Shown here: in pieces, positions 1,720-23,261 of the stretch | How the letters are laid out: each line of letters starts with the position of its first letter | Position numbering within the stretch: position 1 is the first letter of the stretch | Assembly (NCBI GenBank): GCA_964247055.1 | Contig: OZ176051.1 | Coordinates: 11,470,001 to 11,534,000 of the forward strand | DNA: 64,000 nucleotides | Source of the DNA: Paragordius varius | Taxonomy: Eukaryota; Animalia; Nematomorpha | Direction of reading: 5' to 3' | Program-made: the position numbers and the translations under genes | Notes under the pieces: model-generated | Told to the model about the DNA's origin: nothing | Seen by the model: only the letters and a program-made list of their open reading frames with translations | The model's database searches: none

Positions 1720-4240
1720 GTATGGTCAGGGTAATTCAATGGTGAAACAAAATCTTTGGGTGTATGGTTGTGAGCGGCAGAAGGCCCCAGCAATTCTCGG
1801 TTGGGATTGGCTCCAAGAATTCCCCAATGCCATAAAACAGTTGATAAATTGACGTAAATATTTTAATAATATATTTGAGGAATATTCACTTGTTAATAAA
1901 TTTAATTCACTTTTTTGTGAAAAATTAGGGTGTTTCACTGGAACTCCTATCAAACTTTTTTTAAAAAACAATACAAAACCAAAAATTTTTAAGTGTCGCC
2001 GCATGCCGATACCATTAAAGAAAAAGTCGACTCTGAAATTAAGAGACTTTTAGTAGCGGACATAATTAAACCATTAGACTCCACGACTGAGAAACTAACC
2101 TGGGCCCCTATTATTTGTATAACAAAAGCGAATGGTGCCTTAAGATTATGTGCAGATTATAGTGTTACAATAAATTCGCATCTAGTAGATGACAGTCATA
2201 TGGCCGAACAAGCGCCCCCTGCATTTTGCAAAGATTAATGGATAAGATTCTAGGTGACTGCCTAGGAAAAGCTGTATATTTAGACGATATTTTAATAACA
2301 GGAAAAAACCGAAACGAACACAAAAGAAACTTTGAAAGGGTAAAGCGTCTAGACGAATCTGGTTTAAAATTAAGTAAAGGCAAACTAAAACTTTTTCAAC
2401 CGCCTGTAAGTAGGAAATGTTATATCAAACAACGACATCTCACCAGCCGCCGATAAGTTAAAGCCATACAAGAATCTCCAAGACCCACCAAAACAACACT
2501 CAAGTCTTTCTTAGGCTTAATAAATTTTCGCACACGTTTCCTCCCGAAATCGCATGGAAGTTTGGCTGTGCTTCACGAGCTAAGCAGTTATAAAAAACCC
2601 TGGATATGGACTGAAAACCACGAGGACTGTTTCAATAGAGTCATAAATTTAATATGCCATAATGTTAAACTAACTCCGTTGAACTCTGAGTTACTTATAT
2701 CGAAACAGATCCCTAAAATGGGTACGGAGCAGTGTTACTACAGACCACGAGGAGGGCATAAATAAACCCATTGCCTAAGCATCAAGAAAGTGGTCTAAAC
2801 CCGAAGAAAATTATTCAGTGATAGAAAAGGAATCACAAGCCATACTTTTCGCTTTTGAAAAATTTAGAAAGTTTATTACGGAGAAGAAATCTGAGCTGCG
2901 TACTGATCACAAACCACTAATAAAGCTGTTTGGAAATAATCGTAAACTAGACCAAATAAATTATAAGCTACTACGTTGGATATATAAAGCTACCGAATTT
3001 AATTACAATCTACGGTACATTAAAAGCCACGAATTGCAGATCCATTGTTCCGCATGCCGACAGAACCACAAAAACAAGGCACAGAAAGTCTTCAAACAGC
3101 AGAACATGTAAGGTTTGTCATAAAACAGGTAATAAGTCTACTAAGAACAAACAACTGGTCCAATAAAATTTTACATCCATTTTACAATTTTAGAAATGAA
3201 ATTGAAAATACGTACGGATATTATATTGGCATGATAGATTACTAATTCCCGAATTTCAAAAATTAAATATCTTACGATTATTACACAACTGACACCCGGG
3301 GTTTAAAATAATGTACGAACAAGCAAGACAATAGTTTTTTGGCACAGCATGGAAAGCGACATAAAAAAGTGGGTAGATACGTGTAAAAATGTCAAGAAAA
3401 CCGTCCAATGCGAAAATGAATCCCACATACAATTGGGCCACTAATAGAGCAATATGGCAGAGGTTACATTAGATGTAGCAGATCGGAATAGACAATTTTT
3501 ATTGGATGTTCTTATTGATAGTTATTCTCGATGGGTCAAAGTTAAACTATCGTAAATGATATCGACCAAAAATATCTTAAATTTCCTAGACGAATGTTTT
3601 AATCGATGTGGTTCTCCAAGAATGATAGTAACCGACAACGCGTCTTACTTTACATCTGAAGAGTTTAAAAGATTGATGGAAACGGGAAACATTAAATATG
3701 TAACATAAGTTCCCTATCAACCAAAAACGAGCGGAATGGTGGAACGAGTGATATATATCCTCAAAACACATTATCGGTCAGTAGAAGACTGTGACCCCCA
3801 ATCAAGAATAAATAACACGCTTTGGGGAGACCGCACTAACACACAGTGCTACAAATACATGTCCGGCATAACTTTTTATAAAACGCATCCCGCCCATCCA
3901 AATCACATGGCTAATATATAAACAAACAGACTTCTTAGACGATGTACAACTGAATCACGAATACCATGAAAATAAAAAAATATATATAAAATGAACTAGT
4001 GAATGGTTGGCGAGAAGGAATTGTAAAAGAATAATGGGAAGACAAGTTCGTCCGAAGAAACACCACCATCGCATGACCTATGTATCAGGTACCCTACTGC
4101 CACGACCGAAGCCCCGGAATTACCGCCCCAACCCTTGGAACCCTTCATTGAGTTGCCATCCCAACAAACACCCACCATAGCACTTACCACTGACACTCAC
4201 ATAGAACGGCGAACCCTACACGATCCGACACCCATCAGGT
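1720..4240 (+). mobile_element. Degraded Ty3/Gypsy LTR retrotransposon pol (protease end, RT, RNase H, integrase)
   Basis: AILGWDWL (protease end); WAPIICITKANGALRLCADY and AVYLDDILITG (RT); NYSVIEKESQAILFAFEKF and LRTDHKPL (RNase H); VTDNASYFTSEEF and PYQPKTSGMVER (integrase). The RT-RH-INT order is Gypsy-type. Frameshifted. Confidence 0.9.
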
Positions 4241-17141: not shown

Positions 17142-18789
17142 GTGTTGTTCAATAAAAATATATTCTTAATGTTTGTATGTAGGCTAATGGTGAAAATATA
17201 TTTGACATAAGTCAAAAAAATTAATAATTCATGATTTGGTTTGACGAATAAATTTTTGAACTTTTTTTGTGAAAAAAATATTTTGGAGGAAACTTACTAA
17301 TAAATCATTTATTTTTATAAAAGACAACTAAAGCTTTGGTTAAAGTTTTTATGTCTTGTGAAGAATTGCCCAAAGTCATTTTTTACTTTAAGTAATATTA
17401 CCATATTATTTGACAGTATGAACCAATGTAGTTGACACTTTTTATTACTTTTTTATGACAGTTGAGAAATTGCAATGTATTTGCCTTTTTTACATGGAAT
17501 TTATTTTGATTATTTTACAAGTCACAATAATTTGCGATGCTTATCGATAATTATTTTATTCATTATGGCATATAAGATTTAATTGCTATATCACTTAAAA
17601 AATTTCAATAATTATGTAGAAAAGTTATTTATTTGTGGAAAAATAATTTAATATTTAATATATACCAAACGAAAATTTTATTTGATACAATTAATATAAA
17701 AGTTTAAAATGGTATTTTACATTTAAAAAATTTCACACAACTAGTATAATATTATTTATTGGCTTTCGAAAACTTAAAATTATTTTTAATTTAAAAATGA
17801 TATGTTACCTAATTTTCATGGTAAAACCGGTTAATAAAATTAAAATGTTCCTTCCTGTTACAAATTATGCATCTAAGTAATTGAATCGGTTATAAATGAT
17901 AATTTGTTTTATAGGGTTTGCAAATCTATTTCATTAATACATGCTATGATTAAAATTCTTAGTTTTATGTAACAAGCGACTACTTGTTATAATTAAATAA
18001 TTTTTTCGTCTATAAAAAAAATTTTTTGTTTATTCAAATATATACCATTATGAAATATCTTATACAAGTATTTAAAACTTATTGTGTTTATGAGTCGGAA
18101 ATTTATCTCATCATATGATTCAAAATTTCATTTTTTATATTGTTAATTCAAATAAATAATTATAGTTTAATTTGGTCCAATGCCTACCCCAAAAGCATTT
18201 TTCTGGACAGAGTGATTATGTTAACACCTTCAGTTTTTACAGGAGCTTAAATTGATTTGAAAAACGGTATTCGATAAGAGTGTCCGGTACTGAAACGAAT
18301 CGATTTACGTTTCGTTTCCAATTTATAAAAAATTGTTATTGGTTTTGTAAAATATAATGGTTAAATATAAATTAATATCGATAAAAATTGACAACTTTGG
18401 AAGAGTTGATAAACAACATTTACATAGTGTTGGACGTTGGCATGCGTTTGTATTTTAAAAGACAGTTTTAGAACTTAAATAATATTCTTTTTATACTTAT
18501 TTTTATTTTAATCAATAGACTTTTATGTAGGGACAATGATTAAATCAATAATATTTTAATATTCACATATTATGCAAATTTTTAATATTATTCACAAAAA
18601 ATAAACTGTTTCTACAGGAAACTTTTATATTTAATAAATAAACCACACACATACAACACATACAATAGATTCTACATATACAATAACAAGATATAAAGCA
18701 ACTCAACTCATTTCTTATCAGTTAATACATTTTTATAACATATAAAATTATTATTATTAACTTTTATTCGCAAAAATAAATTCCAAACA

Positions 18790-19018
18790 ATGAATGGTCA
18801 TTCCATTACAAACGGTTGCTGTCACCACGAACAAAATGATTTCTACGAGCTAATAGAAAAAGCTTCAGATTACATCAATAGCAAAGTGCCTAAGGATTGG
18901 CCGGAAAAGCCATCTTTTGGTATTATTTGTGGTTCCGGACTTCATCAAATTGGAAAAATATTGGAGGAATCTATCACTATTCCCTATGAAACCATACCTG
19001 GCATGTCAGTGAGCAAAG
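18790..19018 (+). CDS. PNP: Purine nucleoside phosphorylase (trimeric PNP family), exon 1 of 5; gene 18790-22112, 330 aa
   Basis: MNGH...FGIICGSGL...IPYETIPGMSVSK. Phase-1 donor g|gtaatt at 19019. Confidence 0.95.
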
Positions 19019-20024
19019 GTAATTTCGTTATGAAATTTTGCTATATTTTTTATATATCCAAAATTTAGTAAATGAACCACAACCAATGGGTTACAAACGG
19101 ATAAAAAATTTTCATATATAATAATCTAATTTGAAGAAAATGTCGCCATTTGTTAAATGTATGTCATACAATTTTAAACAGGGCTATTATTAAATGTTTC
19201 TTTTAACTAAAGTTCGGAATTTAACAAAAAATTTCTCATAGATTAGGAATGGCTTATTCCTGTTACACACTCCATGCATAAGCAAAATCATTTTTGAAAA
19301 CAAGAAAACTTATTTATCGAAACCCAGACATTTTCTCTTACAAGGCATTTTTTAAATCTACTCCGCAATCTAATTTAACTTAAAATGATAGCTAAATGGT
19401 AATTATGTTTTAAATAATAATGTTGATTAGCATAAAAGTTATGGGGATAGTTCGTTTGCAAAAAGAATATTAGAACGAAAAAAGGGTCCTGAGTTTGAAT
19501 TAGAAAATGTATAATTTTCAGACTTATATAATTGGTATTTTATAAATATTCACGAATACCTATAAAGTTAGTTGCTTTAGTGTTTTGGGAATACAAATAA
19601 TGTATAATAACTAACTAAAATATAGGGATATAAATTTTGAAATTTGATCATATTAATTCTGTAAATTAGTTACAAATAATTTATAGCCTCGTTATAAAAG
19701 GTTAGTATCCAAATACATAACCTAAAACCTTTAATCAGTATTCAATAAAATATGTTTAATTTATTATCTTACTAATATATTATGTAATTGAAAAAATTTC
19801 CTTATATTAACGCGTTTGCATGTTATGTTTGTTATAGGAGTTATAGGTTGAAAAAGTTTTCAACGGTTCGATAAAAAATAGATATTTTATTTTCTTTAAT
19901 TTATTTTATAAAACCAGTTTGGGCTATTCATCAAACCAACCACTATTTATTCGAATATTTTAACGTATTTCATTCTAATAAATTAGTGTTATATTAAAAA
20001 TAATCTTTTAAATTACAATATAAA

Positions 20025-20202
20025 TAAGTATTCCTTACTAGAAAGTTATTAATTATTGCCAAAAAGTTACGAAAACAAATGGCAGTATTATTGGCTTATA
20101 TATATTTTTTTCACTTTATATTATTATTAGCCAATTATTTCCTTTTGTTTTCTTAACTTTTCAATAATTACTAACTTTCTAGCAATGTATACTTACTCAT
20201 AA
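20025..20202. mobile_element. Hairpin MITE family H in PNP intron 1
   Basis: Palindromic arms ctagaaagtt..ttattgccaaaaag / caataatt..actttctag; homologous to 35287-35470. Confidence 0.65.
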
Positions 20203-20364
20203 TGTTTTTTGTATGGCTCATTGCCTATACTCCTTATAGTTATAAAACTGATTGCGTATAAACTATTTTATGTTAAGCAATAATTTATTTACAAAAATTA
20301 TTAAGTTGTTTAAATGTTATTCGAAATATAAAAAGTGGAAATGTAAATAAGATTCATATGTTAG

Positions 20365-20468
20365 TTCTTGGTCACCAAAATTCAGTTGTTATGGGGAAAG
20401 TGAAAGGACATGTTGTAGTCTGCTTCCAGGGCCGATCTCATTACTATGAAGGCAATCCCATGTGGAAG
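20365..20468 (+). CDS. PNP: PNP exon 2
   Basis: ttag| (V)LGHQNSVVMGKVKGHVVVCFQGRSHYYEGNPMWK |gtaaaa. His64, Arg84, His86 and Tyr88 equivalents are present. Confidence 0.95.
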
Positions 20469-20545
20469 GTAAAAAATGCATATATAATTATAAATAACGC
20501 TTACTTAAGTTTTGGCACCGCTTAAAATATTTTCCATATTCGAAG

Positions 20546-20721
20546 GTTACTATGCCAGTACGAATTATGAAGCTATTAGGGTGTCACACACTTATTATTA
20601 CCAATTGCGCAGGTGGAATCAACCCAAAGTTTAAAGTGGGGGATATAATGGTTATGAAAGATCATATCAATTTTGTGGGACTAGCAGGAGAAAATGCATT
20701 GCGTGGACCTAATAACCCAAA
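20546..20721 (+). CDS. PNP: PNP exon 3
   Basis: gaag| VTMPVRIMKLLGCHTLIITNCAGGINPKFKVGDIMVMKDHINF...LRGPNNP(K) |gtatac, phase 2. Confidence 0.95.
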
Positions 20722-21290
20722 GTATACGCAATACTTTGTAAAAAAATTAATAATAAATAAATTCGTTAAGAAATTTTTTTGAAATGTTAAAATAATAATT
20801 GTTATAAAAAGTTTGTCCTATTTAACCGACCCACAACTTTCAAAGCAGTCAAGTAGTTATATAATATATTGAGATTTCCCGGAGAACATTTTAAAATTAA
20901 ATTAACCAATCATTGACAGGGTATAAATTGAAAAATATTCAGTGAATTGGCATAAAGGTTCCCCTGACACTGACTGTAAACACGTTGGAAAAAAAACTCA
21001 AAATCTTTCTAACATATGTTAATTTATATAATTTAAACGTAAGATAAGATCGGATTTTAGATTATGTGCAAAATAGGTCAATTCAATATCCATTTTTCCC
21101 GCCAGATAAATTAAGATTTACTCTACTGTTATGTTTAAGTATTAATTTTAGTTATTAAATTAAGAAATAAAAATGCAAATATGGATATCCAACCTCTAGC
21201 CATTTTGTCCAAAAAATAAGCAAATGTCCCAAAATTCTTATTTATATTTAAGGGATATATTTTAAAAACTAATATGCTATGTGTTAAACT

Positions 21291-21293
<3 letters not shown>

Positions 21294-21323
<30 letters not shown>
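21294..21323. repeat. (TA)n microsatellite abutting the PNP exon-4 acceptor
   Basis: The TA run goes straight into ag at 21323-21324. Confidence 0.95.
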
Positions 21324-21324
<1 letters not shown>

Positions 21325-21325
<1 letters not shown>

Positions 21326-21515
21326 TTTGGAACACGATTTCCACCCATGGAATATTGTTATGATAAGCGGCTCCGATCTAAAGTTAATCAGTTATTCCGC
21401 AAACATCATTTAAGTCATATGCATCAACAAGGAGTTTACTGTTGTATTGGTGGACCGTGCTATGAAACATTTGCTGAATATCGAATGCTTAAAGTTATTG
21501 GATCCGATGCTGTAG
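21325..21515 (+). CDS. PNP: PNP exon 4
   Basis: FGTRFPPM...GVYCCIGGPCYETFAEYRMLKVIGSDAV(G) |gtttga. The Glu201 equivalent is present. Confidence 0.95.
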
Positions 21516-21819
21516 GTTTGAATTGTTGAATTTAAAAGTAGAAGAATGTTTTTACGATATTGATGTGAGTCTGTTATTTAAAAATTATTTTCGATATTTA
21601 TATTCTAAAACTCTATGACTAAAGCTTAATTCTATATATTTTTGATACCTATAACGGATGCTAGTTTGATATTTTAGTAGTTTTTAACAGGAAAAGGAAG
21701 GTACAGGGTACCAATCTTTCACCAGTTAAATAAAAGGCTTATGGATTATACAGTTACAATTTAAAGGAAATATCTATATTCAAATCATATAAATTTGTCA
21801 TTCTTTACGCCTGTTTTAG

Positions 21820-22112
21820 GCATGAGTACGGCACATGAGGTAACCGTGGCCCGGCATTGTGATATGAAAGTTGTAGGACTAAGCCTAATATCTGACATTG
21901 TTAATACACATGAAATGGAGGAAATGTTGAATGAAAGTGCAGATAGTGATTCTGACGATATCAATCCCCATTCTACAGTAAATGGCTCGAATGTGGTTAA
22001 AGCCACTAGTAATGGTACTAGCACAGTAAGTCATGATCAAGTCTTGGCAAGTGCCGAAAACTCTGTTCAACATTTGGCTCTTATCATTAAAAATTTGATT
22101 ACGTCTCTTTAA
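21820..22112 (+). CDS. PNP: PNP exon 5 (terminal)
   Basis: ttttag| (G)MSTAHEVTVARHCDMKVVGLSLISDIV...VSHDQVL...ITSL*. Exon lengths 229+104+176+191+293 = 993 nt give one open frame. Confidence 0.95.
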
Positions 22113-23261
22113 AAATATTAATTTTATAAATCGGGTTATTAGGTCATCAATCTTTTAGCGAAACAAATTATTTATAAGGTGCTATTAGCCTAATTAATTT
22201 TAAAATTTTTTATGAGATTGTACAATAGTGTTTTATAGGATATTTTTTTTATACAACATTAAAACAATAATAAATAATGGTTTTGAAATTTTTTACGTAT
22301 TATGCATTTAGGTTCATTTTTTAGGCTTTCTGATTGTATTCGAATTCATTCGTTTCCGAAATATAAAATATAAAGGTCACTTTGCATAAAAAACTGATTT
22401 AATCACTATATAGTATTATTTATCAAAATAAATAATACCTGTTCAAATAAGGCATGATTTTTTTACGGTTGATTTAATTAACTACGATATAGAGTAAACG
22501 TTACCTAAACTTGTTTGTGATAAATCAAAGTTAACAGAAAAGTCTCAAAGATATAACTAAAGTTTCACTTTTGTCTAACGCCTTTTTGGACACTATAATA
22601 TTTTTAAATGATTAGTTCATGCGGTGGTAAGATCTTAATAACACTTGGATACAACATTCATTTCAGACCTTAGATTCAAATTGGGGTAGATAAATACCCT
22701 AGGCCTGTTTAAAATTAAATACTTAAAAAAATATGAAAAAATCGAAATCATGGCTAAATTTTGCACTTACATAACAATAAACCGAAAAATAGAAAATATT
22801 TCGTTCTAAAATATTGATATTAATTATTTTGAGGTAAAACCTAAAGGTAAAAATTTCGTCACATATGTGCATTAGCTAACATGAAAAATAAAACAATATA
22901 AACCATTTTTTCTATTCCTATCAATGTTAGATGTGATTTAAATAAAAAAATTAGCTTTGCGAAATTTTCAAAAATGATGTAGAATAAAAATAGCCTCAAA
23001 GTAGTTTGACATGGACTTTTTTTTTAAACTAATTATTATTTTATATAATTTTGATTAGGATAAGAGAATAAATTTAAATTTAGACAGTTTCCTACAGTAG
23101 TTTTTTAAGAATATTAACTTAAATACAGTTTGGGATTTCTAGATACCCCAAATTGAATCGAAGTGTCAAATATGTGTGTTGTTAAATAACTTTCCAATTT
23201 GTTTAAAAATATAAACATATACTTAAGTAAACTCTTTTACATTTATACATATATTATAATA

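Follow-up and report, generated by a model that had tools for sequence, protein, structure and literature searches.

A hairworm purine nucleoside phosphorylase with Asp at the human Asn243 column: a candidate adenosine-accepting enzyme within a nematomorph paralog radiation

What does an animal purine nucleoside phosphorylase (PNP) do when the Asn with which it recognizes its base is naturally an Asp? A PNP gene in a 64,000-nucleotide stretch of hairworm DNA (the window) raises this question. The Asn at the human 243 column donates to O6/N7. Whether this site holds Asn or Asp is the textbook difference between the 6-oxopurine PNPs of mammals and phosphorylases that accept adenosine, and prodrug strategies based on PNP build on this switch. 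The original prediction for this locus proposed that an intact gene carries just this exchange and that its product may cleave adenosine.

The gene comprises five exons (Table 1), and tblastn found a single PNP copy within the 64-kb window. Its frame is intact, as had been claimed: the 993-nt coding sequence is open, encoding 330 residues, and all four introns are GT-AG. When profile scores were computed exon by exon, exons 3-5 each rose above the Pfam PNP_UDP_1 (PF01048) cut-off on their own, and the top NCBIfam models for the individual exons were PNPH, PRK08202 and TIGR01697 (PNPH-PUNA-XAPA), with MTAP much lower; for exon 4, TIGR01697 scored 61.7 bits (PNP models, 55-62) versus 31.4 bits for the MTAP model TIGR01694. 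F175 aligns with Phe159, which in the homotrimer comes from the neighboring subunit and completes the active site. Judged by the profile matches and by the phosphate-, ribose- and base-site residues that it keeps, the gene belongs to the low-molecular-mass (trimeric-type) PNP family, which has the NP-I fold. An MTAP identity was considered and dropped, with the MTAP profiles far below the PNP profiles and E217 kept where a Ser would be expected at position 201.

Table 1. Features of the window. Positions count from its first nucleotide; residues of the window protein are paired with those of human PNP.
Feature	Position	Strand	Remarks
LTR-retrotransposon pol remnant	2758-3783	+	degraded, with stop codons
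PNP gene	18790-22112	+	five exons
PNP exon 1	18790..19018	+	ATG start; GSGL phosphate loop; S49 = Ser33; donor GT at 19019
MITE-like element in intron 1	20010-20210		foldback; 49-nt inverted arms, 82% complementary
PNP exon 2	20365..20468	+	H80, R100, H102, Y104, E105 = His64, Arg84, His86, Tyr88, Glu89; AG/GT borders
PNP exon 3	20546..20721	+	N131, C132 = Asn115, Ala116; highest conservation of the exons
(TA)n microsatellite in intron 3	21281-21324		last ~40 nt of the intron, up to the AG acceptor
PNP exon 4	21325..21515	+	F175, Y208, Y216, E217 = Phe159, Tyr192, Phe200, Glu201; ungapped versus human 155-217
E217 codon (= Glu201)	21464-21466	+	in exon 4
PNP exon 5	21820..22112	+	M235, S236 = Met219, Ser220; S258, D259, I260 = Thr242, Asn243, Lys244; H305 = His257; stop TAA
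Asp259 codon (GAC)	21894-21896	+	in exon 5
Codons between Asp259 and His305	21897..22031	+	45 codons, 13 in human PNP; 32 extra residues

Two repeats lie in the introns. The (TA)n microsatellite occupies the place of a polypyrimidine tract in front of exon 4, and the read contigs break there. For the MITE-like element of intron 1, the summed contig depth is 1.8e5-5.7e5 in runs X1 and X4, compared with roughly 600 nearby, and the runs with the labels organism B and organism C contain the element as well; because of this depth and this distribution, we regard it as a member of a very high-copy repeat family.

The Asp itself is encoded by GAC and lies within the peptide ARHCDMKVVGLSLISDIV, just as the original prediction read it. 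HMMER alignment to PDB chains places exon 5 residues 1-36 on human PNP 218-254, gap-free up to the Asp, so that residue D26 of the exon, which is D259 of the protein, falls on human N243 and the following Ile, I260, on K244, again as predicted. Among the PDB chains, this exon matches 3gb9 best, a human protein engineered to carry E201Q and N243D. Upstream, the exons align to human and bovine PNP without gaps at residues 63-95, 96-152 and 155-217, and we combined these alignments with a MAFFT alignment to obtain the residue equivalences of Table 1. They bear out the claim that the remaining active-site residues are kept: the phosphate site (human Ser33, His64, Arg84, His86 and Ser220) is complete, as are the ribose, catalytic and base contacts Tyr88, Met219, His257 and Glu201, and Asn115, Phe159 and Tyr192 also have identical counterparts. 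A 6-oxopurine-specific PNP in the sense of TIGR01700 has Asn at 243; the window protein has Asp259.

Besides Asn243 to Asp, the substitutions relative to the human enzyme are Phe200 to Tyr, Ala116 to Cys, Thr242 to Ser and Lys244 to Ile. Those at Lys244, Thr242 and Phe200 weigh little, since these positions vary among ordinary Asn-type animal PNPs too, and Tyr at the Phe200 site is common in invertebrate and bacterial members of the family. Cys at the Ala116 site was seen, among the aligned sequences, in hairworm paralogs only.

The original prediction overlooked a second departure from the human protein. The 32 extra residues between Asp259 and His305 follow directly on the Asp, inside the 241-260 gate loop that in mammalian PNP closes over the substrate, and they form an acidic segment rich in Ser, Asn, Thr, Asp and Glu. 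We take the insert as coding because its GC content (0.37) is exon-like (exons 0.38-0.44, introns 0.23-0.26) and because a search within it for an in-frame GT..AG pair with a convincing donor found none; for the same reasons a retained micro-intron is unlikely. The insert is probably a disordered surface extension, and it may modulate loop closure and alter the effect of the Asp on specificity.

Where the gene comes from is best seen against the PNPs of another hairworm, Gordionus sp. m RMFG-2023, which supplies the nearest protein (56% identity; the Asn-type XP_065318127). No ortholog above 56% identity appeared in a protein HMMER scan with exon 3 or in a follow-up search, and an exon 5 query of a collection of 5.8 billion proteins gave no match. 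Gordionus has at least five PNP genes, and they differ in just the residues that concern us here. One copy (P0280) is canonical, with Asn at 243 and no loop insert, and in the last exon of the Asn type the sequence runs from the Asn to the His257 equivalent uninterrupted. Three others (P0039, P0271 and P0197, locus L001 10001-19417; accessions of this type are XP_065318773 and XP_065318134) combine Ser243, Gln201 and Thr33 with a loop insert of ~30 residues, and two more (P0242, P0130) carry Thr at 243; Asp is absent from all the Gordionus copies sampled. The hairworm paralogs share invariant phosphate and ribose sites (the Ser-type copies being listed with Thr33) and vary at base-pocket positions 116, 201, 242, 243 and 244 only. 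In the Ser-type copies, whose pocket is thus fully rebuilt around a catalytic core that stays intact, the insert is located at the same place as in the window protein, and an additional intron interrupts it; similarity between the two inserts was undetectable in Smith-Waterman comparisons against shuffled sequences (p = 0.26-0.63).

In two maximum-likelihood trees, the window protein falls within the clade of all Gordionus PNP paralogs with high support (100/98 and 100/100), and its sister there is the Gordionus Asn-type copy, a pairing that is moderately supported (94/72; 85/81); placing it with the Ser-type copies is also compatible with the data (AU p = 0.137). Its terminal branch is 0.7-1.1 substitutions per site, similar in length to the branch of its Gordionus sister. 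The window and Gordionus genes also have exon borders in common, at residues 76/77, 111-113, 170/171 and 233/234. Within 10 kb of the genes we found the window to share no synteny with the Gordionus loci: LTR-retroelement pol remnants are the only matches there, so synteny is neutral on orthology. One such remnant in the window (Table 1) resembles an RNase H/integrase ORF beside a Gordionus PNP gene (L002 1-1449). On the evidence of the trees and the sampled copies, the window gene is a member of a hairworm (Nematomorpha)-specific PNP paralog radiation and not a single-copy gene that switched on its own, and this radiation is a more interesting lead than the Asp switch itself.

How unusual the Asp is depends on where one looks. 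The original prediction named a common, already characterized Asp in invertebrate PNPs as a finding that would refute it, and it called for a survey of the column; we ran this survey on 147 other, mostly animal, PNPs and found Asn in 138 and Asp in a single one, the remaining exceptions being chiefly the Gordionus Ser and Thr copies. Asp is thus not common there, the prediction stands on this point, and the Asp of the window protein goes beyond what chance would give. The one other Asp belongs to a gene model of the seed beetle Callosobruchus analis (P0002, CAI5848494.1) that fuses three tandem copies; the middle copy has Asp and the flanking copies have Asn, as does a relative from C. maculatus (P0214). 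Bacteria present another picture. In a survey that took one genome per species and kept the best 80 loci, the 82 motif instances of the trimeric-type family divided into 62 with Asn and 20 with Asp, the latter including every sampled Bacteroidota locus, some Paenibacillus, Cohnella and Bacillus copies (three of the four with Met at 201), and Thermosipho, Gemmatimonas and WOR-3. Among the solved structures in our alignment, four from this family (8swt, 4m1e, 4lna and 6tk9) have Asp as well. Asp is therefore not limited to hexameric PNPs and MTAP, the Asp users that the original prediction named, and since Asp is frequent in bacterial trimeric-type members, its chemistry is not new to the family.

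Some of these bacterial proteins also differ at the Glu201 site: PunA-type copies from the Bacillales Cohnella, Halalkalibacter and Bacillus piscicola (L030, L032 and L033) pair Asp243 with Met there, and in 6tk9 the residue is Ala.

Horizontal transfer from Asp-type bacteria is excluded by the tree and by the introns shared with Gordionus. Because of those introns, and because the protein sits inside the animal clade, the Asp is an independent, convergent change; as far as the sampled sequences indicate, Asp is a common natural state in the bacterial trimeric-type family and is rare in animals, with an independent origin here.

A literature search on hairworm purine metabolism returned nothing relevant, and to our knowledge hairworm metabolism is essentially unstudied. 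A trimeric PNP of Thermus reportedly prefers adenosine. The expectation in the original prediction that Asn to Asp should admit adenosine finds backing in published mutants of the human, calf and K. lactis enzymes (PMC6128611, PMC5074518, PMC6274182). The adenosine kcat of human N243D is up about 5000-fold (cited in PMC6128611), and K. lactis N256D reaches an adenosine kcat/Km of 2.2e6 when the wild type has no detectable adenosine activity, its inosine efficiency being about tenfold lower (PMC5074518). In calf N243D, the base regiochemistry is altered (PMC6274182). The 243 column is not the sole determinant of specificity, however, because S. mansoni PNP2 cleaves adenosine and yet keeps its Asn (Asn245; PMC6128611), and in the window protein A116C and T242S add to the differences from human PNP.

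On balance we think it somewhat probable that the window gene encodes a working PNP whose specificity has been broadened or shifted to adenosine, in convergence with the bacterial Asp-type enzymes. D259 replaces the base-recognition Asn in a site that otherwise keeps Glu201, the phosphate and ribose sites and the counterpart of the neighboring subunit's Phe159, and the Asp carboxylate would contact N7/N6 of adenine as in the mammalian and yeast mutants. The enzyme would phosphorolyze adenosine (and deoxyadenosine) to adenine and ribose-1-phosphate, with activity on inosine and guanosine reduced but kept, and the adenine could then feed APRT, giving the parasite a route of adenine salvage. The change from Asn to Asp arose within an animal PNP lineage as part of the hairworm-specific paralog expansion. 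The analysis establishes how the gene is built, which residues it has, where it falls in the tree, that it is under purifying selection and that its Asp is rare among animals; the adenosine activity, trimeric state, role of the insert and physiological use are what we infer.

Could the Asp be an artifact, or the mark of a gene on its way out? GAC and AAC are one base apart, which is the opening for an assembly or sequencing error, but the read contigs make such an error hardly credible. A contig from run X1 (21742-22064; depth about 743) and one from run X3, a separate study (21755-22038), both span the Asp codon, and the two match the window over 21755-22038 with one difference each. The Asp codon is not among the differences listed for these contigs, where one that had high depth and lay well inside a contig would be expected to rank. 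GAC is well supported in X1 and falls short of formal proof in X3 and in X4, a run with a divergent haplotype. That the gene is a redundant copy drifting to loss of function, or unexpressed, with the Asp and the insert as signs of relaxed constraint, would fit its long terminal branch, and none of the RNA runs that we checked for the PNP gene contained it. Such drift is nevertheless very unlikely, given the open frame and four GT-AG introns, catalytic residues that are all kept except the one for base specificity, and a Gordionus sister branch of similar length. The haplotypes speak against it too: the exonic differences listed are 14 synonymous and 6 non-synonymous, when chance predicts a synonymous share of ~21% (binomial p = 4e-6; 7e-4 counting transitions only), and all six replacements lie in variable surface regions. 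This excess of synonymous changes points to purifying selection and therefore to a working gene. In run X1, most of the region at 18700-22200 is represented by two versions of the contigs about 3% apart (for example records 5 and 6 at 20726-21034), which points to high heterozygosity or a pooled sample.

If the gene is working, it may still do something other than cleave adenosine. It could be an ordinary inosine/guanosine phosphorylase in which the Asp is neutral or compensated, for instance because it stays protonated or because the enlarged loop shifts its position. Glu201 and all the other pocket residues conserved in 6-oxopurine PNPs are retained, N-to-D mutants are still appreciably active on inosine (PMC5074518), and the gene, in the trees sister to the canonical Gordionus copy, may be the housekeeping ortholog. 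We consider this unlikely, however, because in each of the trimeric PNPs given the N-to-D change (human, calf and yeast; PMC5074518, PMC6128611, PMC6274182), adenosine became a good substrate, and because the near-constancy of Asn in the animal survey implies that Asp is not neutral. Alternatively, the protein could be a neofunctionalized paralog for another substrate, such as methylthioadenosine, a pyrimidine riboside, nicotinamide riboside or a host-derived nucleoside. The hairworm paralogs do vary specifically at the pocket sites, the gate-loop insert is large, and S. mansoni PNP2 is a precedent for a trimeric PNP that accepts cytidine (PMC6128611); but the low MTAP scores and the retained Glu201 argue against it, and we found no pointer to a specific alternative ligand, so that we hold it to be about equally doubtful.

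The gene is of interest in several ways. As a naturally Asp-switched animal PNP under purifying selection, it offers a test of how far one residue reaches in setting the specificity of trimeric PNPs, an example of convergence with the bacterial Asp-type enzymes and a lead into the purine salvage of hairworms. This value is tempered because the chemistry is known from mutants and the Asp type is common in bacteria. More speculatively, and we put this forward as a tentative possibility only, hairworms may have built, from a single housekeeping PNP, a whole set of paralogs that differ in their base pockets (Asn/Glu, the Asp/Glu of the window protein, Ser/Gln and Thr) around an unchanged core, several of them with an enlarged gate loop. 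If so, the phosphorylases of an obligate parasite would act on adenosine and perhaps also on pyrimidine or MTA-like substrates, and animals would have replayed repeatedly, in nature, a specificity switch known from mutagenesis.

Among known systems, MTAP has the NP-I fold, is trimeric and recognizes adenine with an Asp at the equivalent site; it combines this Asp with a Ser in place of Glu201, whereas the window protein has the Asp and keeps the Glu as Glu217. S. mansoni PNP2 is, like the protein described here, a trimeric-type paralog of a parasitic animal, with a relaxed base specificity that includes adenosine, but it keeps Asn245, achieves its breadth by other substitutions and is not close kin (PMC6128611). 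The Gordionus PNPs are the nearest relatives and share the introns, with the Asp found in the window protein only among the sampled copies. The engineered trimeric mutants (human N243D and E201Q/N243D, 3gb9/3ggs; calf N243D; K. lactis N256D) share its fold and carry their Asp at the equivalent site, and the single N-to-D mutants also keep Glu201 as the window protein does; by comparison, the window protein is natural, is known here from its sequence, and has the 32-residue insert along with A116C, T242S and F200Y. Finally, the bacterial Asp-type PunA/PNPH enzymes (for example those of Bacteroidota; 8swt, 4m1e, 4lna, 6tk9), for which we sought kinetic data in the literature and found none for 8swt and its relatives, are members of its family with Asp at the equivalent site, but their loop is short and some copies replace Glu201 with Met or Ala, whereas the window protein has a long loop and keeps the Glu. 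With its spliceosomal introns and its place in the animal clade, the window gene resembles these PunA-like PNPs by convergence and not by shared descent.
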